Virus record (IMG/VR): IMGVR_UViG_3300021511_000003 | Span: 124,001-188,000 of that record | Strand: one strand, 5' to 3' | DNA length: 64,000 bases | Shown here: one piece after another, positions 197 through 59,877 of the stretch | Layout: each line of letters starts with the position of its first letter | Position numbering within the stretch: position 1 is the stretch's first letter | Program-made: the position numbers and the translations under genes | Notes under the pieces: model-generated | Told to the model about the DNA's origin: nothing | Database searches by the model: none | Seen by the model: the letters and a program-made list of their open reading frames with translations, nothing else

Positions 197-1483
197 ATGT
201 TAGTTGAGTCGAAACGTGGAATTTGGAGAGAAGACACAATTCAAAGAGATATATTACCAATACCCTCACAAATTATGCGACAATTTGGTATCTCTGCCGA
301 AAATGCAAAACATGTATTGAAATTAGAAGATTTAAGAAAAACACCACCTAATATTATTATTGCTGAAGCAAAAAAGACTTTTGGTTTTATGCAAAATTAT
401 TTCAGTAGACAACAATTAAAAAAGAAACAAAAATATGTAATGGGACTTGGTGTTTTCCAACAACTTTTTAAAGATAGAAAAAATAAAAAAATTAAGTTGT
501 TGAAAGCTACAGTACCAAAATTTAAAAATGTTTATAAGCCATATATTGGTCAGGATATAACTGACAAAACTATTCTTGTATTCCGAACTGGAGGAATAGG
601 TGATCTTCTATTTATTCAACCCAATCTAATATATTTAAAAAACAAATATCCCACATGCAAAATCAAATTTGCCTGTGGTCCGCAATATCAACCTATGGTA
701 AATAATTGGCCTTGTGTTGATGAAGTTTTAGAGTTACCATTCTTATTTAAACATATGATAAAGTCAGATTATCATATGTTATTTGAAGGTGTTATTGAAA
801 GGTGTGAAGAAGCAAGAACGGTAAATTCTTACCATCTTTTTACACGATGGCTTGGGTTAAATTTACCAGATAATTTACTTATCCCAAGACAAGATCCGAA
901 AACAGAACTTATTGATAAATGTTTTAATATATTAACAGAATGGGGGATTGTGAATAAATCATTTGTATTGATGCAGTTACGTGCAAGTTCTCCCATTAGA
1001 ACTCCAACACATGAATTTTGGGTTAAAATTATAGACGAACTGAATGAGAGAGGTCACTATGTTGTTTTAACTGATAGCCCAAGACAATCAGAAAAAATTG
1101 ATGAATTTATTAAAATGTTGAAAAAACCAGAAATGATATTTAACTTTTGTAAACATTCAAAATCTATTGCTTATACAATTGCTCTTACTAAATTAAGTAA
1201 ATGTGTTTACGCTACAGATTCAGCATTGATGCATATTGCTGCATCTATGGATATAAAATGTTTTGGCGTATTCGGGCCATTCCCTGGTTATATTAGATTG
1301 AGTACATATCCTTATGCCTCTTGGGTTGATGCAAAAAGAAAGTGCTCACCATGCTGGATTCATTCACATAAACCTTGTCCACAATCGAAAGATGGTTATA
1401 GTCCCTGTTATGATGAACTTGTAAATACTGATGATAAATTGAAAAAAGTCATTGATAAATTTGAGGATTTATTAAACAGATGA
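197..1483 (+). CDS. Glycosyltransferase family 9 (heptosyltransferase-like)
   Basis: RTGGIGDLLF and DSALMHIAA..GVFGP motifs, C-terminal CSPC cysteine cluster typical of GT9. Confidence 0.85.
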   Translation: MLVESKRGIWREDTIQRDILPIPSQIMRQFGISAENAKHVLKLEDLRKTPPNIIIAEAKKTFGFMQNYFSRQQLKKKQKYVMGLGVFQQLFKDRKNKKIKLLKATVPKFKNVYKPYIGQDITDKTILVFRTGGIGDLLFIQPNLIYLKNKYPTCKIKFACGPQYQPMVNNWPCVDEVLELPFLFKHMIKSDYHMLFEGVIERCEEARTVNSYHLFTRWLGLNLPDNLLIPRQDPKTELIDKCFNILTEWGIVNKSFVLMQLRASSPIRTPTHEFWVKIIDELNERGHYVVLTDSPRQSEKIDEFIKMLKKPEMIFNFCKHSKSIAYTIALTKLSKCVYATDSALMHIAASMDIKCFGVFGPFPGYIRLSTYPYASWVDAKRKCSPCWIHSHKPCPQSKDGYSPCYDELVNTDDKLKKVIDKFEDLLNR

Positions 1484-4206: not shown

Positions 4207-4411
4207 TATATGGATTCAACAAAATAAGGATAAACTTGAAGCTTTAAAAAGACAGTTAATTGAATATAATTATCAAGGATCATATGGTGGTGCAATTGAT
4301 TTAATGAAAGTTAATAATATGATTGATGGAGCAATAATTGAAATTCTAAAACTTCAAACAGAAAATGAGGTTTTGGCTGGAGAAGTTCGAAGACTTACAG
4401 ATAAAGGGTAA
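4187..4411 (+). CDS. Small coiled-coil hypothetical protein
   Basis: AGGAG RBS before ATG 4187; 74 aa. Confidence 0.65.
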   Translation: MAQQTNNIWIQQNKDKLEALKRQLIEYNYQGSYGGAIDLMKVNNMIDGAIIEILKLQTENEVLAGEVRRLTDKG

Positions 4412-7082: not shown

Positions 7083-7994
7083 TTGCAATTCATATTACCA
7101 GTAGAATCAATTATACAAAATAAAGGTGGTGTGATTTTATATGATCCAATCGCTAATAAAATTCTGAAGCAATATGTTCATGATAAAAAATGGACTCGAG
7201 TTGGATGGCGTGGAGGTAAAGTATATAAAAAATATTTAATTGCAACCGACTGGTCAGATTTACATTATTTTAATATAAAGTCTTGGAAATATGAAAAAAC
7301 ATTTAAAAAGTCAACATTTAATGATCTTCATTATGTTGAAGTATATAATGACAAACTTTATGTAGTTAATACTGGTCTTGATGCAATTGAAATTTTTAAT
7401 ACCCCATTAAACCCACAGTTTGAAAAAATTGAATTCTTATTTGAAAAAAGAGCGGATATTTTTAAACAACGAAACTTTGATTTAAACAAAAACTATAATG
7501 AACTCATGAAAGTGAAACCACATTCATGTCATCCAAATTGTATATCATTTGATAAAAAGAGAATTTTTATTACATGTTTTGGAAAAAACCAAAAACTTAA
7601 TTCAGGAGAAGTTATTGAATTAAATAACAATAAAAAATTATTTAATAGAAGGAATTATGATTGTCATGATGGTATATTTTATAACAATGATTACTATTTA
7701 ACTCATACACGACATGATATTATTCTTGTATATAAGGATTTATATACGAGCAAAATACCAATGGAACCAACTAAAAAAATTAGGATTGGTGGTGGTAAAG
7801 GTTGGTGGAGGGGTATGGTTATTGTTGATGATGTCATATATATATTTGCAAGTGATGGGTACAGAAATAAAAAAACTACAATCAGAATGGCGACAATAAA
7901 TTTAAAAACCAATAAAAAAACAAAAATTAAACTTCCGGTTGTTGATGGTATTCATTGGGATACTATATATCAACCAAATTTTTATGCGGGATAA
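7083..7994 (+). CDS. Hypothetical beta-propeller protein
   Basis: Repeated blade-like motifs (NDLHYV, HPNCI, HDG, WWRG); TTG start with GGGGG RBS. Confidence 0.55.
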   Translation: MQFILPVESIIQNKGGVILYDPIANKILKQYVHDKKWTRVGWRGGKVYKKYLIATDWSDLHYFNIKSWKYEKTFKKSTFNDLHYVEVYNDKLYVVNTGLDAIEIFNTPLNPQFEKIEFLFEKRADIFKQRNFDLNKNYNELMKVKPHSCHPNCISFDKKRIFITCFGKNQKLNSGEVIELNNNKKLFNRRNYDCHDGIFYNNDYYLTHTRHDIILVYKDLYTSKIPMEPTKKIRIGGGKGWWRGMVIVDDVIYIFASDGYRNKKTTIRMATINLKTNKKTKIKLPVVDGIHWDTIYQPNFYAG

Positions 7995-7996
7995 AT

Positions 7997-8764
7997 ATGA
8001 AATTACCTGACTTTATTATTATTGGAGCGGCAAAATGTGGCACCTCTGCACTATTTATGAATTTGGATAAACATCCAGATATATTCATGGGACAAAAAAC
8101 TAAAACTTCAATTGAATTTCATTTTTGGGGTTATCCGAAAAATTATAAAAAAGGACTCAATTGGTATAAGAAAGCGTTTAAAAAAGATAAAGTATGTGGT
8201 GAAAAAAGTATTGAATATTGGGTAAATCATAAATCAATGAAATTAATAAAAAGATACATACCTAATGTTAGATTAATTTTATGTGTAAGGAATCCAGTTG
8301 ATAGAGCGTTTTCAAATTACCAACTGCATCATCGAAAGGGTCGTGTTGGTGCTTTTACATATAAATTATTTAAACAACAAAGTGTATATTACAAAAGAGG
8401 TCTTTATTATAAAGGTTTAGTTACAAGGGTATTGAAATATTTTGATAAAGATCAAATTTATATATGTGTTACTGAACATATGAAACAAAATACAACAGAA
8501 GAAATACGAAAAATATATAAATTTCTTGGGGTTAAAGATTTTGTATTACCAACAAAAAAGATTTCAGGTAATGTTAAAGAGAGGGCATCTAGTTTTGGTG
8601 AGGACTTCATTAAAAGTAGGGAAGAAAAATTTTATCGTGTATGGGATAAAGGTACAATGAAAATGGAACCAGCACTACGAAATCAATTATTACAATATTA
8701 TCGTCAATCCAATGAAGAATTATTTGATTTTTTGGGGTATAGAATTAAGGAGTGGATGAGATGA
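7997..8764 (+). CDS. PAPS-dependent sulfotransferase
   Basis: PDFIIIGAAKCGTSAL (5'-PSB) and VRNPVDRAFS (3'-PB). Confidence 0.9.
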   Translation: MKLPDFIIIGAAKCGTSALFMNLDKHPDIFMGQKTKTSIEFHFWGYPKNYKKGLNWYKKAFKKDKVCGEKSIEYWVNHKSMKLIKRYIPNVRLILCVRNPVDRAFSNYQLHHRKGRVGAFTYKLFKQQSVYYKRGLYYKGLVTRVLKYFDKDQIYICVTEHMKQNTTEEIRKIYKFLGVKDFVLPTKKISGNVKERASSFGEDFIKSREEKFYRVWDKGTMKMEPALRNQLLQYYRQSNEELFDFLGYRIKEWMR

Positions 8765-33687: not shown

Positions 33688-34449
33688 TCATATTTTTTCT
33701 CCTTCAATTTCTTTTATATCATCTTTTACTTTTGTATAATCGACTCGTTTTTGATAAGTGCCTTGCAATTCTTTTGCTAAAGCATCTTTGATTTTTTGGA
33801 GGTCACCGAGTCTCATTACAACATCATCTAACTGCCCATCGCTCATTAAATCATTAATTGTATCTTCAATAATAATCAAAGGGTCAAACTCTGACTGACG
33901 ATTTTGAGCCTCTGATCTTGATCTTGCTTCTAGATGATCACATATCATTAAAATTGCTGATTCTATGCATGTTGGAATTGTACCTTTATAACGATAATGA
34001 TCCTCAACGTCGCTTCCTGATTTTTTAAAGAAGTATTTCATTACTGAAGTACCATGATGTTGAGTTGCAATTTTAATCAATTCAATGGGAAAAACACCTT
34101 CGTGTAATAATATAAAAGCTGTGTCCGAAATGTGTCTACTTATAATTTGAAAACTTATTTTTGGATCAAGGTTATCGTGTGCATTTTCACTATCTAATTG
34201 ATTTTCTGTAAAATAGTTGGGATTTATGATTTTACCAACATCATGATACAATGCCGCAACTTTCATAAATGTTATATCAAGACCTAAGTCAATTGAAATT
34301 GCTTCAACCATCGATGCCAAGTTTTGTGAATGTTTATAACTACCAGGGCACATTTCTCTAAATTTGTTTAATAAAGGATAAGAAGTTTCAAGTAGGTCTT
34401 TTAGAACATCTTTTTCTTTTTCATCATGTTGACTAATTTCATCGACCAT
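33688..34449 (-). CDS. Stand-alone HD/HDIG phosphohydrolase (PgpH-like HD domain)
   Basis: PGSYKHS, YHDVGK, YF.ENQ, QHHGT, YRY.G..P, MICD..EA. Confidence 0.85.
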   Translation of the reverse strand: MVDEISQHDEKEKDVLKDLLETSYPLLNKFREMCPGSYKHSQNLASMVEAISIDLGLDITFMKVAALYHDVGKIINPNYFTENQLDSENAHDNLDPKISFQIISRHISDTAFILLHEGVFPIELIKIATQHHGTSVMKYFFKKSGSDVEDHYRYKGTIPTCIESAILMICDHLEARSRSEAQNRQSEFDPLIIIEDTINDLMSDGQLDDVVMRLGDLQKIKDALAKELQGTYQKRVDYTKVKDDIKEIEGEKI

Positions 34450-34473
34450 TATATCTCCTAACTTTGATTAAAA

Positions 34474-34551
34474 TGGTACCCCCGGCAGGATTCGAACCTG
34501 CGACTTCCTAGTTCGTAGCCAGGCGCTCTATATCCACTGAGCTACGGGGGC
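34474..34551 (-). tRNA. tRNA-Arg(ACG)
   Basis: CCTGG CTACGAA CTAGG; CCA encoded. Confidence 0.92.
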
Positions 34552-34558
34552 TTATTTA

Positions 34559-35251
34559 TTAATAAGGATAATCAATAATTGTAATTTTATCCGAATAGTA
34601 CCACTCAAACATATTTCTTCTAAGTTTAGCCATATAGATTTTATTTTCAGCTTTTCTTCTCAGATTATAAAATACTATACCTTCTGCCATAATATCTTTA
34701 TTTCCTTGTTTTGTAGCAAACCGAGAAATAAGCCAATCTTTAAACCATAGACTCCAATTATCAAACGTTCTATCATGTTCATGAAATGATCTATATGATA
34801 GATGTTTAACTGCTTTTTCAAAAGGATACCAAATATGTGTTTTCAATTTATAAGGATTCCCCTGTAGTTTTGGTCCTATTAATTCGCCAGCTTGAACCCC
34901 ATCTTGTTTTACATACCCTTTTGAAATTGCTTGAAAAACACCTTCGATGATAAATGTTTTTCCTTTTATAATTTGTAATGGGTCAATTACATTTTTTCTA
35001 TTTTGAAGAGCAGTTAATCTACCATTTTCTGTCATGAGTTTTATATTGCTACCATCTAATTTTTCTACTGCAAAAGTATCTTTATCCTCAAATACCCACT
35101 CATATCCAGGAGTGATTTCAGTAGTTACTAAATATGCAGATGGTCTTCGTAATTGTAATTTTCTTCCATATTTTTTCCATTCAGTTATGTTCACGTCAAA
35201 GTCCTTTCTAATAAAAGGACATTGTAGTTTTGGAAAGTTTGTTAGTACCAT
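34559..35251 (-). CDS. ATP-dependent RNA ligase family protein
   Basis: Nucleotidyltransferase motifs EKLDGSN, GELIG, EGIV, AKLR. Confidence 0.8.
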   Translation of the reverse strand: MVLTNFPKLQCPFIRKDFDVNITEWKKYGRKLQLRRPSAYLVTTEITPGYEWVFEDKDTFAVEKLDGSNIKLMTENGRLTALQNRKNVIDPLQIIKGKTFIIEGVFQAISKGYVKQDGVQAGELIGPKLQGNPYKLKTHIWYPFEKAVKHLSYRSFHEHDRTFDNWSLWFKDWLISRFATKQGNKDIMAEGIVFYNLRRKAENKIYMAKLRRNMFEWYYSDKITIIDYPY

Positions 35252-35277
35252 TTTTACACCTATATGTATTATTGTGT

Positions 35278-36189
35278 TTATTCAGTTATTGTTCTTAATT
35301 TATTAATATACATTTCCATTTCATCAAGAACTGAATTGATTGAGATATTCGTTGTAATTGCATTTTTTAAAGAACCATAATGATGCTCGAGACATTGAAG
35401 AAGTAAAGATTTGATTTTATCTTCATCTGGAGAATGTTGTAATGAACTAAATGTATATAATGACTCAAGTTCTTTTTCTTTTATTTTAAAGTATTCAACT
35501 AATTGGTCTTGACTCCATTCACCACTTCTAATTGATTTTAACTGTTCTCTATTTCTTTCAAGATCAAGATTATGTTCAGTTAGTATTTGTTCTATTTCAT
35601 TTAATAAACGAACTACATGATATGCAAATTTTAAATCATATCCATATTTCTGAATCATATCATATCGTGAACTTCCAGGTTCAGGATTTTTAATTTTCAT
35701 TTTATGAAGTTGGCTATAAGCATACCCTTTAAATCTATACCATGCTCCTTTATGAAGAAACAATTTTCGGTTTTCTCTGACTAATTCACCTACAGCAGTA
35801 GAATGTAAAATACACCGTATAGGAACGAAAAGAGAGTCAATCATATTGGGATTATTTTGCATACACAATTGAAAATATTTAACAATTGAATATATAGTAA
35901 AATCATATTCTTTTTTAGCACTTATATCATTTACATGGTGTTGTTGCCATTGTTCAAATCTTTTATGTTGTTTTCCAAACCCTTGAATTATTCCATTTAA
36001 ATTAGGAAATACAACATGTTTTGGTGGAATACAAAATCCATAAATATCCATATCTGATGTATCAGATGAAACACCATAAGCAACAGACCCCATAATTACT
36101 TCATATTGTACATTGTTTTTTAGAAATCCAGGTGGTCGAATTAATTGCCTGGATGTTAGTCTATCAATAATTGATCCCATATATATCAC
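35278..36189 (-). CDS. Pol-beta superfamily nucleotidyltransferase (YcgL/RlaP-like)
   Basis: GSVAYG....SDMD, NPN..D.LF, GYA.SQ, K.AYH..RL, L..IR.G. Confidence 0.82.
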   Translation of the reverse strand: MIYMGSIIDRLTSRQLIRPPGFLKNNVQYEVIMGSVAYGVSSDTSDMDIYGFCIPPKHVVFPNLNGIIQGFGKQHKRFEQWQQHHVNDISAKKEYDFTIYSIVKYFQLCMQNNPNMIDSLFVPIRCILHSTAVGELVRENRKLFLHKGAWYRFKGYAYSQLHKMKIKNPEPGSSRYDMIQKYGYDLKFAYHVVRLLNEIEQILTEHNLDLERNREQLKSIRSGEWSQDQLVEYFKIKEKELESLYTFSSLQHSPDEDKIKSLLLQCLEHHYGSLKNAITTNISINSVLDEMEMYINKLRTITE

Positions 36190-36213
36190 CTTTTATATCA
36201 TGACCTATATAAA

Positions 36214-37560
36214 TTAAATTTTTATTCTCTTTATAATTTTAATAAGGTCTTTTTTATTATTCACTATTGGATTTTCAATCACTGCATCAAGTAATATCTT
36301 GAGAATTTTACCAACGTTTGGTCCTGGTGGAATATTTATACATTCCATTACATCTTTACCATTAATTGCTAAATCTGTAACATTAAATTCTCCAGATAAG
36401 GTTATGTGCCTAGCTTCATAAATCATCATAACCATTTTTTTCAATTCTGTTTTTGAATAATCAGAAACTCCCAAATTTCCTTTTTTATCAGCTACTTTTA
36501 ATTTAAACCAATCTTTCCAATTGACCTTATGTTCAGAAAAGAGTCGTAGCATTCTTCTTACCCCTTTTCTTTTTATATCTTTTGATAAACTTCTCATATG
36601 AAATCTTGTTAGATCACTTACTCGTTTAATTTCATCTTTACTAAATACATATTTGTTCATCCACTCTTTAACAAGTCTTTGACCAATATCTTCATGATCA
36701 ACAAAATTTTCTTCGTTTGATTCTATCCATGCATCAGGTTTGCCAATATCATGAATATATCCTGTTAATCTTAATATAGGATCTTTTGGTGAAATATTAT
36801 CACCAACTAATTTAAAATGTGTACATAAAGTTTCATTGTGATATTTACCACCAGGAAACCCATATAGTCTATCAAGTTCAGGAAATATATTTTTTAATAA
36901 GCCTGTTTCATGTAATACATCGAAAAATATACTTGGTTTTTTGTATGGCATTGCTTTCATAAATTCAAGTCTTATTCTTTCCGGTGAAACTTTTAATATA
37001 AGATCGCAATTTTTTTTAATTGCTAAAAAGGTAGATTGATCTAAGGTTCCTTCAATCAGGCAAGTAAATCTTGCGGCACGGATCATTCTTAAATAGTCTT
37101 CATAAATTCGTTGTTCAGCATTTCCTACAAACCTTATAATTTTATTTTCAAGATCTTTTCTACCGTTGAATTTATCTATCACTTCACCAGTATAAGGACA
37201 TACTGCCATGGCGTTAAATGTAAAATCTCTACGCATTAAATCATCATCTAAAGTTTCGCACGCAGTAGTAATACAATTATGACGCCCAGGTTTCATATTT
37301 TTATCAGATCTATATGTTGAAACCTCAATACTATCTATTAATGTTACAAGAAAGCTTGCTCCTACAAGATCTACTTTACGATCAGGAAAGATATGTGCAA
37401 GATCATCGGGGGTTGCATCTGTAACAATATCATAATCATGAGGATCAAAATCTGCAAATATATCTCGTACTGCTCCTCCAACTAAATACGCACTCCAACC
37501 ACATTCACATATTCTTTGAATTAACTTATCACTTAATTCTTCTTCAGTATTGCTTTTCAT
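36214..37560 (-). CDS. cca: CCA tRNA nucleotidyltransferase with HD domain
   Basis: LVGGAVRD, DYDIVT, DDLMRRDFTFNAMA, EDYLRMIRAARF, ERI..E, HDIGK. Confidence 0.92.
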   Translation of the reverse strand: MKSNTEEELSDKLIQRICECGWSAYLVGGAVRDIFADFDPHDYDIVTDATPDDLAHIFPDRKVDLVGASFLVTLIDSIEVSTYRSDKNMKPGRHNCITTACETLDDDLMRRDFTFNAMAVCPYTGEVIDKFNGRKDLENKIIRFVGNAEQRIYEDYLRMIRAARFTCLIEGTLDQSTFLAIKKNCDLILKVSPERIRLEFMKAMPYKKPSIFFDVLHETGLLKNIFPELDRLYGFPGGKYHNETLCTHFKLVGDNISPKDPILRLTGYIHDIGKPDAWIESNEENFVDHEDIGQRLVKEWMNKYVFSKDEIKRVSDLTRFHMRSLSKDIKRKGVRRMLRLFSEHKVNWKDWFKLKVADKKGNLGVSDYSKTELKKMVMMIYEARHITLSGEFNVTDLAINGKDVMECINIPPGPNVGKILKILLDAVIENPIVNNKKDLIKIIKRIKI

Positions 37561-40137: not shown

Positions 40138-40223
40138 TGGAGCGGGCGGCGGGATTCGAACCCGCGATGCATAAATGCGTCAACGTGGAAGGCTGATGGA
40201 GTACCGGACTCTCCAACGCCCGC
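40138..40223 (-). tRNA. tRNA-Gly(UCC) with long variable arm
   Basis: TCAGC CTTCCAC GTTGA; 14-nt variable region CGCATTTATGCATC; GCGGGCG/CGCCCGC-U-CCA. Confidence 0.85.
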
Positions 40224-42139: not shown

Positions 42140-42213
42140 TGGCAGGTCAGTGGGATTTGAATCCAACTTCTGGGTTTGGAGTCCAGTATTCTTACCGTTA
42201 GAACTACTGACCT
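42140..42213 (-). tRNA. tRNA-Trp(CCA), weak T-stem
   Basis: CTGGA CTCCAAA CCCAG; AGGTCAG/CTGACCT-G-CCA; short variable region and mismatched T stem. Confidence 0.7.
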
Positions 42214-42225
42214 GTAAATATTTTT

Positions 42226-42304
42226 TGGTGACCCCGACGGGACTCGAACCCGTGTATTGAGGGTGAAGGCCTCATATCCTTATGCCTATTAGGACTACGG
42301 GGTC
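42226..42304 (-). tRNA. tRNA-Glu(UUC), C33
   Basis: TGAGG CCTTCAC CCTCA. Confidence 0.88.
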
Positions 42305-43084: not shown

Positions 43085-43470
43085 TGGTGGACCAGCTGGG
43101 AGTCGAACCCAGTTCCGCAAAAATTCAAATTAAGTATCTACACTCATAGTCAACTTTTAGATTTAGTTACCCCCACGTTCAAACACGGAGTTGACATAAC
43201 AACGGAGCCAACGGTGTACATTTGCTGGTAAGTTTGAAAATAAGAATGCCAGTTTGCAGTACCATTGCCCATTCTTATTTCGATCTCTTTACGTCGATGC
43301 CCCATCCCAATTCAAGAGAATAATTGGGTGGAACAGATTAAGCAGCTTTTGCGAAATCGGTGTAATAATCGTCTGCAATTATTGTTAGTGATAATGTTTT
43401 TACGGAGTAACATATCATTCTCCGGAGTGCAACTTTTTTTTCTTTTCCACGTCGAAACCTTTTCTGGCCC
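43085..43470 (-). ncRNA. ssrA: tmRNA, tag peptide ADDYYTDFAKAA
   Basis: 5' GGGCCAGAAAAGGTTTCGAC, 3' CTGGGTTCGACTCCCAGCTGGTCCACCA with G3:U70; tag frame 43376-43338 ends AA-stop. Confidence 0.95.
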
Positions 43471-44061: not shown

Positions 44062-44133
44062 TGGCCCAGGTGGGGATCGAACCCACGAATGAGGGTTTTA
44101 GAGACCCCTGCTCTACCACTAAGCTACTGGGCC
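44062..44133 (-). tRNA. Amber suppressor tRNA (anticodon CUA), CCA not encoded
   Basis: GGCCCAG TA GCTT AGTGGTA GAGC A GGGGT CTCTAAA ACCCT CATTC GTGGG TTCGATC CCCAC CTGGGCC A. Confidence 0.9.
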
Positions 44134-45020: not shown

Positions 45021-45088
45021 AATCTCCTTTTTATTTCAGTTTAATTAATACAAAATACAATGTTTTACATTATAACTGAAATAGGAGG
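45021..45088 (-). promoter_or_regulatory. SD-sequestering hairpin
   Basis: CTCC-TATTTCAGTT pairs with AACTGAAATA-AAAA-GGAG (SD of 45017); inner ATAATGT/ACATTGT stem. Confidence 0.75.
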
Positions 45089-45265
45089 TCCACGACATAT
45101 CTATGGAAATTGTGACTGTGCTAACTAGTCATCAGTCCACTCAAAGTGGCATTCTGACTCGCAACACTTATTTGCACCGTGAGATTTATTAATCTCTTCG
45201 GCGTCTTTGGCTTCATCTATTCGATGATCGCCAGAAATACCTTTATCCTCTGATTTTCTTTCCAT
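45065..45265 (-). CDS. Leader ORF with two in-frame UAG codons and RGPP motif
   Basis: AAGGAG RBS; MERKSEDKGISGDHRIDEAKDAEEINKSHGANKCCESECHFEWTDD-TAG-LAQSQFP-TAG-ICRGPPISVIM-TAA. Confidence 0.7.
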
Positions 45266-45300
45266 TATATTTTACTCCTTTGTTAACGTAATACTTCAAC

Positions 45301-45316
45301 ATTTATATTATGTTCT
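45301..45316 (-). promoter_or_regulatory. Promoter motif B driving the leader operon
   Basis: AGAACATAATATAAAT ~36 nt upstream of leader ATG. Confidence 0.6.
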
Positions 45317-45361
45317 GATAAATGTTGTATAATAGTTTGAGAAATTGATATGGAGTGAAAA

Positions 45362-45448
45362 TGGTGGGGGGTGGAGGAGTTGAACCACTTGCCACCGCCT
45401 AACATATTTTGGCAACGATTTTACAGACCGCAGTTAGGAACACCCCCC
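45362..45448 (-). tRNA. Non-canonical tRNA-Tyr(GUA): no D-arm, giant variable arm
   Basis: GGGGGGTG TT CCTAAC T GCGGT CTGTAAA ATCGT TGCCA AAATAT GTTAGG CGG TGGCA A GTGG TTCAACT CCTC CACCCCCC A CCA. Confidence 0.75.
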
Positions 45449-45657
45449 ATTATTTTAAGTCTTTACGTTTCCTCTCGATTACATATTCAATAACTTCTCC
45501 AAACTTATCAAATTCGATACATTTGAATTTTGTTCTTATATAAAAATAAAATAACCCAAATCTTTTTTTAACTCTATATTTACCCTTACCGTAATTAATT
45601 ATACGATAAGTTCTATTTGTATTTTTAACATGTGCTTTCCCATGATTTTATTCCTCC

Positions 45658-48262: not shown

Positions 48263-48350
48263 TGGTAGCGGAGAGGGGATTCGAACCCCTGTTCTTATTA
48301 CAAGATCTGGCTTATGAGACCAGTGAGCTAGACCACTACTCGACTCCGCA
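48263..48350 (-). tRNA. tRNA-Met(CAU), initiator-like, long variable arm
   Basis: U1xU72 mismatch, A11-U24, CTGGT CTCATAA GCCAG, 16-nt variable region ATCTTGTAATAAGAAC. Confidence 0.85.
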
Positions 48351-56652: not shown

Positions 56653-59600
56653 TTGTTTTCAATAAAAAATTCGTTTTCGAATTGTTCAATATGCGATTTA
56701 CTTGAAGAAGGTTCTTGTATACTTGAAACAAATTGCAAAGGAGATTTGAAAAAGGTCGATGTTATTTTTGTTGCAGAAAATCCTGGTAAAGAAGAAGTAA
56801 AAATTGGAAGACCTCTTATAGGAAAAGCAGGTAAAAAATTCCGACAGTATTTTAATAAATTCGGAATCAATAAAATGAACTATTTATTAACAAATGTTGT
56901 TATGTGTCAAACAATTAATGAGGATGGAACAACTGGGAATCCAACTCAAGAAACAATTGAATTATGTAAAAATAATTGCATGGAAATAATAAGAAATTGT
57001 AATCCAAAGCTTATTGTTTTAATGGGTACAAGTCCAATGTCTGCCTTTGGTATTGCAAAAGTGGGTATTACAAATATTCATGAAAGATATGAATTGTTTG
57101 AGTGGGAAGGGTTTAAAACGATGGTTATTGTTCATCCTTCTTTTGTAAATAGAAATCAATCATGGGATGGTAAATTTTCAGAAGCAATGTCTCGAATTGC
57201 TGAAATACTTGGTGGAAAATATGTTAAAATGCCAAAGAAAAGCCAAACCAAAACATTAGGTAAAGGTATATTCAGATATAGTATTCCAAAGAAATTTTAT
57301 ACAAATGATTATAGACTTATTGATGTTCAATTTTTAAATAGAACAAGTCAGGTTTTATATATTTTTAGGGATAAAGATAATAATAAAATTTTTCATAAAG
57401 AAAATGATGATCATGTATGTTATCAAGCTCCAAAGGATGTTGAAGCAAGAAAAATTGTTCCATATAGCAAGTTAGATAAAGTTATGATTAAGTATAGAGA
57501 TAGATATAATTTGGATCCGAATATTACATATGAGGGTGATGTTAGATTAGCATCTAAACATGCTATGGATTATTACTATAACAATAAAGGTGAATGTCCT
57601 AAGACTACATCAAATATTATGTTTTTTGATATTGAGATTGACACTGGAAATGAAAGAGTTTTTCCAAAACCGGAAGATGCAGCATTCCCAATCAATCTGA
57701 TAACAACAATTTATAATGGTACCACAATTTGTTATGGAGTTGATAATAAAACAGAAGAAATAAAACGACGTCCTGATATAACTTATAAAATATTTAATAA
57801 TGAAAAGCAGTTGATGTGTTCATTTATTAAGGATTATAAGAAAACTGATCCAGATTTTTTAGCAGGGTGGAATAGTATTAGCTTTGATTTGGCATATATT
57901 TATAATAGATTGCCACAGATCGGAATCCCTCAAACAAGTATGAATAAATTTGGGGAATTTTATGTTGAAGGTGCAAAATTTGTTTGTCATATCCCTGGTA
58001 CAGTTCCAATAGATCAATATTTTTTGTATCGTACATTTACATTTACAAACATGGAAAATTATAAATTAGGGTTTATTGCTCAACATGAATTGGGTATAAC
58101 AAAAATTGAATTACCATTACCAATAAATGAAATGTACTGGAAAATGCAAAGTTTGACATATGAATATAATATTCGAGATAGTGAATTGTTGGAAAAGCTT
58201 GATGATAAACTGGGTCATATTAATCTATTAAATGAACTAAGAATTATTTGTAATACTAATTTTGAAGCAACTTCATCATTCGGTCAAATTGATTCATTAA
58301 TGGTATCATATCTTAGGAACAAAGGTATAGCATCAAAAAATAGTGACCCACATATTATAAAAGAACGTTATCCAGGAGCATATGTACATCAACCAATTCC
58401 TGGTGTATATGATTGGATTACAGATTTCGATTTTACATCTCTGTATCCAAGTCTAATAATTACTTATAATATCGGTGTTAATAGTTTTGTTATGAAAACG
58501 AAAGATCCGCATATTGGTTACGATCTTGTATATGATAAAAAGAATGTTCCTGATGAAATTGAAATGATTATTGATCCATTATATAAAGCGAAGTCAGTTA
58601 AAATGTCATACAAGAAATTGTATGAAAACGTACAAAAAGATGATTTGATTCATACAATCAATGGTTGCTTTTTTCAACCACATAAAAAGGTATTATCTGT
58701 TTTCGGAGAAGTTGTTGACATGTTAATGGTCTCACGAAAAGAATATAAAGAAAAAATGTTTGATGCAATTGAAGCTAAAGATAAAGATTTAGAAAAGTTT
58801 TATTATACACGGCAGTTAGTATATAAAGTTCTAGCAAATACATTATATGGAGTTGTTGCAAATAAAGCATTTAGATTCTTTAATATTTCTTTAGCATCAG
58901 CTATTACACTTGCTGGTCAAGAAGTAATAAAAACATCAATTATTGAAGGCGATGCTTTTATGAGGCACCTTAATACAGGTAAACCTTATATATCACCAGC
59001 AAAACTTACAAAAAGAGAAATGTTTAGTGATGCAATGCCAGATAGAGGCAATGAATATATTCTTACAGGTGATACAGATTCAATATTTTGTTGTTTTGAG
59101 AAATTCAATGATGTATCAGTTGATAACATTCGTAGTTGGTGTAAAGAGATTGAATTATTTTTAAATGAAGATAAAATTCTTGATGTTGTAAAAAGACATA
59201 ATTGTGATCTTGATTTTAATAGAATGAAACTTAAAAATGAGTTGATTATTTCTCGTGGTTTATTTCTTGCAAAAAAGAGATATGCTATTCGTGTAATTAA
59301 TAATGAAGGAAAAGATGTTGATAAAATAAATTATATGGGCGTTGAAATTAAGAGATCAGATTATCCAAGTAAATCAAAAGAATTTTTATCCACATTATCA
59401 GAGTTAATTTTGAAATCTGAAAAAGTTTCAATAGGTCAATTAATGAAATTTATTAATCGTCAAGAGAATGAATTTCTTGAATCTATTTATAAGGGAGAAA
59501 AAGTTATTGCTCGACCTGTGTCATATGGTAAATTATTAAAGGATTATAAAAATATCCCTCAAGGAGTAAGGGCTATGGAAGCGTGGAATAAAATAATGTA

Positions 59601-59877
59601 TAATGTTCATAAAACAGGTAATAGAGCATATATGTATTGGGTTCAGGGTATTGATCTTGAAATAGCTCCTAAAGATGTAAGAGAAAAATATCATCAATAT
59701 GTAAAAGATGGAAATAAATTGGAAGTAATTGCAATACCAGATGAAGAAAAGAGGTTACCAAAATTCTTTATTCCAAATAAACAAGCAGCATTAAAATTTA
59801 CATTTAAAGATAGATATGAACTAATGTTGAAACCATTAGAGTTGAAAGTAAAAAAGCAGGAAGTTCTTACTTTCTAA
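56653..59877 (+). CDS. polB: Family B DNA polymerase with N-terminal family-4 uracil-DNA glycosylase domain
   Basis: UDG4: CSIC, AENPG.EE...G.P.IG.AG, TN.V.C, HPS; Exo FDIE, GWNS..FD, YN..D; Pol DFTSLYPS, K...N..YG, GDTDS, KKRY. Confidence 0.93.
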   Translation: MFSIKNSFSNCSICDLLEEGSCILETNCKGDLKKVDVIFVAENPGKEEVKIGRPLIGKAGKKFRQYFNKFGINKMNYLLTNVVMCQTINEDGTTGNPTQETIELCKNNCMEIIRNCNPKLIVLMGTSPMSAFGIAKVGITNIHERYELFEWEGFKTMVIVHPSFVNRNQSWDGKFSEAMSRIAEILGGKYVKMPKKSQTKTLGKGIFRYSIPKKFYTNDYRLIDVQFLNRTSQVLYIFRDKDNNKIFHKENDDHVCYQAPKDVEARKIVPYSKLDKVMIKYRDRYNLDPNITYEGDVRLASKHAMDYYYNNKGECPKTTSNIMFFDIEIDTGNERVFPKPEDAAFPINLITTIYNGTTICYGVDNKTEEIKRRPDITYKIFNNEKQLMCSFIKDYKKTDPDFLAGWNSISFDLAYIYNRLPQIGIPQTSMNKFGEFYVEGAKFVCHIPGTVPIDQYFLYRTFTFTNMENYKLGFIAQHELGITKIELPLPINEMYWKMQSLTYEYNIRDSELLEKLDDKLGHINLLNELRIICNTNFEATSSFGQIDSLMVSYLRNKGIASKNSDPHIIKERYPGAYVHQPIPGVYDWITDFDFTSLYPSLIITYNIGVNSFVMKTKDPHIGYDLVYDKKNVPDEIEMIIDPLYKAKSVKMSYKKLYENVQKDDLIHTINGCFFQPHKKVLSVFGEVVDMLMVSRKEYKEKMFDAIEAKDKDLEKFYYTRQLVYKVLANTLYGVVANKAFRFFNISLASAITLAGQEVIKTSIIEGDAFMRHLNTGKPYISPAKLTKREMFSDAMPDRGNEYILTGDTDSIFCCFEKFNDVSVDNIRSWCKEIELFLNEDKILDVVKRHNCDLDFNRMKLKNELIISRGLFLAKKRYAIRVINNEGKDVDKINYMGVEIKRSDYPSKSKEFLSTLSELILKSEKVSIGQLMKFINRQENEFLESIYKGEKVIARPVSYGKLLKDYKNIPQGVRAMEAWNKIMYNVHKTGNRAYMYWVQGIDLEIAPKDVREKYHQYVKDGNKLEVIAIPDEEKRLPKFFIPNKQAALKFTFKDRYELMLKPLELKVKKQEVLTF

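Follow-up and report, generated by a model that had tools for sequence, protein, structure and literature searches.

A phage tRNA-Tyr gene without a D hairpin, in which covariation supports a pseudoknot between the 5' connector and the variable arm

Our results show that a gene on the minus strand of a phage contig has the sequence of a tyrosine tRNA with no D hairpin, in whose place covariation supports a six-base-pair helix between the 5' connector and the loop of the variable arm. The same layout recurs in more than 160 distinct tRNA-Tyr genes, found in IMG/VR phage contigs and in bacterial genomes, mainly in dense Planctomycetota tRNA arrays, and ARAGORN and Rfam miss almost every member tested. 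We consider it likely that the gene encodes a working elongator tRNA-Tyr built on a non-cloverleaf scaffold, although in the absence of RNA-level data its expression, its charging and its three-dimensional fold are inferred rather than shown. The gene lies in a 64,000-nucleotide stretch of IMG/VR record IMGVR_UViG_3300021511_000003 (positions 124,001 to 188,000), which we call the window. An earlier sequence-only reading had described an 8-bp acceptor stem, a 4-bp T stem with one mismatch, a GUA anticodon arm and a 9-nt remnant of the D arm whose CCUAAC is complemented by GUUAGG in a 25-nt variable arm, and had proposed that the D stem is rebuilt from the variable loop. The description is correct to the base, and the interpretation is supported by the homologs. 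That said, the design is neither an oddity of one phage nor specific to Tyr. The parts of the gene, numbered along the window and, in parentheses, along the tRNA, are as follows.

45362-45448, minus strand: the whole tRNA-Tyr(GUA) gene, 87 nt including the encoded CCA (45362-45364) and the discriminator A (45365)
45441-45448, minus strand: acceptor stem 5' strand, GGGGGGUG (nt 1-8), of which nt 8 makes an eighth pair
45439-45440, minus strand: UU linker (nt 9-10) between the acceptor stem and helix A
45433-45438, minus strand: helix A 5' strand, CCUAAC (nt 11-16), the D-stem substitute, followed by a single U
45415-45431, minus strand: anticodon arm, GCGGU-CUGUAAA-AUCGU (nt 18-34), with the anticodon GUA at 45422-45424
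45410-45414, minus strand: helix C (variable stem) 5' strand, UGCCA (nt 35-39)
45404-45409, minus strand: A/U-rich linker, AAAUAU (nt 40-45), from the tip of helix C to helix A
45398-45403, minus strand: helix A 3' strand, GUUAGG (nt 46-51), lying inside the variable-arm loop
45395-45397, minus strand: CGG (nt 52-54), whose GG is the proposed equivalent of G18-G19 that docks on the T loop
45390-45394, minus strand: helix C 3' strand, UGGCA (nt 55-59), followed by a single A
45374-45388, minus strand: T arm, GUGG-UUCAACU-CCUC (nt 61-75), a 4-bp stem with one U.U and a canonical T loop
45366-45373, minus strand: acceptor stem 3' strand, CACCCCCC (nt 76-83)

The gene is not called by ARAGORN, and the Rfam tRNA model (RF00005) does not reach threshold. 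The best Rfam match is tRNA-Sec (RF01852), with only 25.5 bits against a threshold of 47, and the anticodon is GUA rather than UCA. Other low-scoring Rfam hits, namely HPnc0260, mir-1175 and mir-1224, are well below threshold and only reflect the T-arm/acceptor end. Likewise, the minimum-energy fold of the single sequence is uninformative (z = -0.52) and cannot show a pseudoknot. In one sequence, a 6-nt match such as that between CCUAAC and GUUAGG has, by our estimate, roughly a 1% chance of occurring, and it is the evidence from the family that makes it significant.

Homologs were collected in several steps. An exact 19-mer from the anticodon arm found the identical contig in IMG/VR (L002, 223 kb) and one relative (L004) with the same layout but with CCCAAC/GUUGGG, a compensatory U-A to C-G change. 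A pattern anchored on the anticodon loop, the variable stem and the T loop gave 20 loci, all with the same architecture and with further variants such as CCCUAC/GUAGGG, CCACAC/GUGUGG and CCCUAU/AUAGGG. Finally, a looser pattern that left both helices free (UUCC, 8-13 nt, CUGUAAA, 28-42 nt, GGUUCRANUCC) yielded, after filtering for tRNA-like acceptor and anticodon stems, 162 distinct sequences. It should be noted that these patterns fixed UUCC, the anticodon loop and the T loop, so that conservation of those parts is not evidence, and members that vary there were missed. The UU linker is found in most members, but two loci (L009 and L015), found with a pattern that did not fix these bases, have AU instead. 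Hits to Bordetella, Achromobacter and other Alcaligenaceae in the genome scan are a different tRNA and were discarded, while BLAST against the deposited phage genomes of INPHARED found nothing, either with 1.2 kb around the gene or with two common family members.

Is the long-range helix real? The looser pattern did not constrain its 3' strand, and yet, among the 162 sequences, 142 (88%) have a 6/6 complement (G-U allowed) of nt 11-16 inside the variable region and 19 have 5/6, whereas pairing the 5' strand of one member with the variable region of another gives 6/6 in only 12% of cases. What is more, 48 different 5' strands occur. On a gapless seed alignment of 33 sequences, using a structure that includes the pseudoknot, 95.7% of cells pair against 70.8% when shuffled, and RNAalifold on this alignment independently returns the 8-bp acceptor stem, helix A, the anticodon stem and the 4-bp T stem. 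A covariance model built from the seed, which did not contain the window gene, scores the latter at 79.7 bits (E 2e-20). Members score 41-96 bits with this model, as compared with only about 28-30 bits for two canonical phage tRNA-Tyr genes (L001 and L003).

The model was then used to align 101 members that are less than 86% identical to each other. On this wide alignment, 95.0% of cells are paired against 65.5% when shuffled, the covariation score is 0.778 against 0.198, with 0 of 500 shuffles reaching the observed value, and slid registers give only 43-54% paired. Helix A is 98.3% paired, with two invariant C-G pairs and four pairs that show many double changes (for example, CG 36, GU 24, GC 16, UA 13, AU 7). 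The acceptor stem is 99.6% paired and all eight of its pairs covary, including the eighth (8:65), which is paired in all 101 cells (GC 66, UG 17, UA 9, AU 6, CG 2, GU 1) and gives an 8/4 acceptor/T configuration. The anticodon stem is 99.4% paired, with all five pairs covarying, and the T arm is 94.8% paired. The core pairs of helix C are 85-90% paired and compensatory (for example, CG 38, GC 17, UA 15, AU 7), even though helix C was not part of the model and the alignment is therefore not fitted to it. Since helices A and C cross, the core is a pseudoknot. The linker between them is 4-10 nt long and A/U-rich across the family. One further member of the scaffold, at 727-826 (minus strand) of contig L062 and next to the Tyr gene of that contig, keeps the acceptor stem, helix A, the GG and helix C, but has about 17-19 nt in place of a 7-nt anticodon loop (45.7 bits), and could hold an intron or have a different function.

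When the anticodon was freed in the pattern, the same scaffold turned up with the anticodons UAU (Ile), UCU and CCU (Arg) and, in a single member, GCA (Cys), each with a full acceptor stem, anticodon stem and helix A. The Cys member lies at about 8433-8520 (plus strand) of L342 (IMGVR_UViG_3300042991_000483), has an encoded CCA, and was the one true member among chance hits to ordinary tRNAs in a scan for other G-starting anticodons. A scan for GUB anticodons (His/Asp/Asn-type loops) gave no hits. The identity marks follow the isotype. Namely, the discriminator is A in 77/77 Tyr members and U in the Cys member, while the base right after the conserved GG is A in 15/18 Arg members, but in only 14/75 Tyr members and 0/5 Ile members (Fisher p = 4.6e-7 for Arg against Tyr). 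The GG itself is found in this segment in 75 of 77 Tyr members, usually as YGG directly after helix A. As A20 is, to all appearances, the main D-loop identity element for ArgRS, and U73 for CysRS, this pattern is what one expects if the GG stands for G18-G19 and these RNAs are charged by the normal synthetases. Some Tyr genes with the scaffold (L021 at 7975-8060, minus strand, as well as L022 and L027) have C1-G72 with A73, the archaeal/eukaryotic-type tRNA-Tyr identity pair.

In the window, the gene supplies the only tRNA-Tyr in an otherwise complete set, as the sequence-only reading had also noted. ARAGORN finds 23 tRNAs, a tmRNA and a CUA suppressor, and two further tRNAs are seen only by Rfam, which we read as Glu(UUC) at 42229-42304 and Trp(CCA) at 42143-42213, so that 19 amino acids are covered and Tyr is the only one left. 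In phage contigs more generally, the gene sits in tRNA clusters, usually as the single rewired member among canonical tRNAs, although L021 has both a canonical tRNA-Tyr (7633-7718) and a rewired one, and contig L254 has a canonical Tyr and a rewired Arg. Among cellular genomes, 40 of 62 carrier loci are labelled Planctomycetota, including the complete chromosomes of Schlesneria sp. T3-172 and Lacipirellula limnantheis I41. There, the gene lies inside arrays of 20-39 tRNA genes in about 5 kb, in a fixed slot between Leu(CAA) and Glu(CUC), and in three such arrays (L187, L156 and L139) ARAGORN finds all 19 other isotypes and no Tyr, although a canonical tRNA-Tyr elsewhere in these genomes is not ruled out. 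These arrays match the horizontally spread L-arrays described in PMC8421152. The CCA is encoded in 88/109 viral copies and in 0/40 Planctomycetota copies, as expected for genes adapted to their genomes. Neither ARAGORN nor Rfam at its gathering threshold detects the rewired gene in any of the ten and six loci tested, respectively, while ARAGORN called one member, in locus L155, as a 98-nt tRNA-Tyr. Phage and array tRNA sets are therefore reported as lacking Tyr (or Arg, Ile or Cys) when they are in fact complete, which skews studies of phage codon compensation and of tRNA arrays.

The most likely explanation, in our view, is that the gene encodes a working elongator tRNA-Tyr, in which the 8-bp acceptor stem and the 4-bp T stem together make the usual 12-bp acceptor branch. 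Helix A is separated from the anticodon stem by one base, which often adds a seventh G.U pair, and should therefore stack on the anticodon stem where the D stem normally sits. In that inferred arrangement, its 5' strand would occupy the path of canonical positions 22-25, and its 3' strand plus the following YGG the path of positions 10-13 and of G18-G19, with the GG docking on the unchanged T loop to close the elbow of the L. In effect, the D hairpin would have been cut open and its second strand and loop grafted into the variable loop. This arrangement is, however, reasoning only. In particular, the GG sits directly against the tip of helix C, which limits how the variable stem can point, and a classical stacked H-type pseudoknot would bury the YGG instead. 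As for function, the host's bacterial TyrRS may charge the RNA through A73, the GUA anticodon and the retained variable stem, and the RNA would then serve as the phage's tRNA-Tyr within a full tRNA set.

The genomic context fits such a role. The tRNA cluster (32.6-52 kb, minus strand) is interleaved with an RNA-repair-type gene block (33688-37560, minus strand) made up of an HD-domain protein (33688-34449), a weak RNA-ligase-like match (34559-35251), an RlaP family RNA-repair nucleotidyltransferase (35278-36189) and a CCA-adding enzyme (36214-37560). The phage therefore maintains its own tRNA supply and repair functions. No tyrosyl-tRNA synthetase was found among the 30 ORFs scanned. Outside the cluster lie many glycosyltransferases and a 1074-aa ORF (56653-59877, plus strand) that fuses a uracil-DNA glycosylase domain to a family B DNA polymerase.

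Could the gene be something other than a decoding tRNA? A tRNA mimic, be it a decoy that soaks up a tRNA-targeting nuclease or another tRNA-binding host factor, or a regulatory tRNA-like RNA, is conceivable, as phage tRNA-Tyr can act as a supplement or decoy against Septu (PMC13096335), the gene sits among RNA-repair-type genes, and L021 carries a canonical tRNA-Tyr as well as a rewired one. We nevertheless find this unlikely, although no charging data exist. Namely, it is the only Tyr adaptor in four otherwise complete sets (the window and the three arrays), the isotype-specific identity marks are kept, and the 12-bp acceptor branch, the canonical T loop and the anticodon loop are all retained, which a decoy for a D/variable-arm nuclease would not need. 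It is also improbable, in our opinion, that helices A and C do not coexist, with the RNA switching between two nested folds or with only helix A forming and the variable stem being incidental. In favor of this reading, nested-model energies for the window copy are similar (-25.6 kcal/mol with helix A, -27.4 with helix C and -21.7 with neither, approximate values because of the U.U pair), helix C is less well paired than helix A, and in Arg-type members it shrinks to 2-3 pairs. On the other hand, both helices covary in the same sequences, their strands do not compete for the same bases and, while the fifth pair of helix C is weak, its four core pairs hold.

A decayed tRNA-Tyr that lost its D arm by deletion is very unlikely. 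Although standard detectors reject the gene and its T stem has a mismatch, more than 160 distinct sequences across phages and bacteria keep the same layout with compensatory changes in every helix, a pattern that requires purifying selection on the structure. An assembly or sequencing artefact that removed a normal D arm is less likely still, with nothing in its favor beyond the oddity of the gene. The 1.2 kb around the gene is present in 11 marine-sediment and hydrothermal-vent metagenome runs from several studies, and contigs from four runs in four studies cover 45044-45579 with no differences and no indels. Short contigs in two of the runs match only the 3' end of the gene (45361-45393) and then diverge into a variable region with GUUGGG, and a related phage with a variant of the same tRNA therefore co-occurs in these samples.

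How does the scaffold compare with known tRNAs? Like the D-armless tRNAs of mitochondria, it has no D hairpin and a short connector joins the acceptor and anticodon stems. In mitochondria, however, the connector is unpaired, the molecule is flexible, and the T loop and elbow contacts are degenerate, while here the connector forms a conserved 6-bp helix with the variable loop, a GG and a canonical T loop are kept, and the genes lie in phages and bacteria. With the (8/4) allo-tRNAs and the 8/4 tRNA-Ser and tRNA-His of bacteria and phages (PMC5389517), and with tRNA-Sec, it shares a 12-bp acceptor branch split 8/4, a long variable arm and a long (about 6-bp) D-type helix followed almost at once by the elbow contact, which is inferred here, a resemblance (PMC5389517, PMC7609411) that would also explain the weak tRNA-Sec match. 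Yet, those tRNAs have an ordinary D hairpin with a tetraloop, whereas here the two strands of the helix are 30 nt apart and the second one lies inside the variable loop. Tyr is, moreover, not among the isotypes listed in PMC5389517. Canonical bacterial class II tRNA-Tyr, finally, has in common with the scaffold the GUA anticodon, A73, mostly G1-C72, a variable stem and a canonical T loop, but differs in its 7/5 acceptor/T split, its D hairpin with G18-G19 in the loop and its variable loop of only 3-5 nt.

We found no published description of this fold in full-text searches and targeted reading that left out most subscription journals, so an earlier report cannot be excluded, and Rfam 15 has no matching family. 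One candidate structured RNA in a 2023 IMG/VR survey (DNAVirus_1423, PMC10690425), which sometimes overlaps Aragorn tRNA-Tyr calls, might be the same thing and may represent a partial sighting. The tRNA-array papers that we consulted describe gene organisation and list tRNA-Tyr among the rarest array isotypes, and in the term searches that we ran on them they do not report a non-cloverleaf Tyr tRNA. It is about as likely as not, in our judgement, that these genes define a third architectural class of functional tRNA, beside class I and class II, in which the D arm is assembled in trans from the 5' connector and the variable loop, giving a pseudoknotted core on an 8/4 acceptor branch. Such a class would serve at least Tyr, Arg, Ile and Cys, would have spread through phage tRNA clusters and horizontally transferred bacterial tRNA arrays without being seen by current annotation tools, and may be maintained because it escapes host nucleases or other factors that read the canonical D/variable region. 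The cloverleaf with a local D hairpin is treated as near universal outside mitochondria, and a widespread, selected alternative that rebuilds the D stem through a pseudoknot would show that the L-shape can be reached by a different chain topology, which bears on tRNA folding, on recognition by RNase P, synthetases, EF-Tu and modification enzymes, and on the design of orthogonal tRNAs.

As to why this design is kept, resistance to host nucleases that recognise or cut the D/variable region of tRNAs is no more than a tentative possibility. Septu and retron-Eco7 cut the variable arm of tRNA-Tyr, and the T5 tRNA-Tyr resists through a distinctive variable loop (PMC13096335, PMC11555353). Locking the variable loop into a pseudoknot and removing the D hairpin could block such recognition. 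That said, the scaffold also serves Arg, Ile and Cys tRNAs, so a Tyr-specific nuclease-evasion story cannot be the whole reason. The link to phage tRNA clusters, RNA-repair genes and mobile arrays makes a testable connection to tRNA-targeting immunity.

In the window, tRNA-Gly(UCC) (40138-40223, minus strand, 86 nt) and tRNA-Met(CAU) (48263-48350, minus strand, 88 nt) fold with long, class II-like variable stems, which is unusual for Gly and Met tRNAs, as these normally have short variable loops. The same cluster holds a canonical 72-nt suppressor tRNA with anticodon CUA (44062-44133, minus strand), labelled Pyl by ARAGORN, and a phage-encoded tmRNA (43085-43470, minus strand) with tag ADDYYTDFAKAA, and the suppressor hints at TAG read-through or recoding in this phage. 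In the Planctomycetota arrays, the tRNA-Met(CAU) genes (L134 at 7229-7297, plus strand, L187 at 4240-4310, minus strand, and the same slot in other arrays) are only 69-71 nt long, with a 4-nt D loop without GG and a T loop that is not UUCRA.
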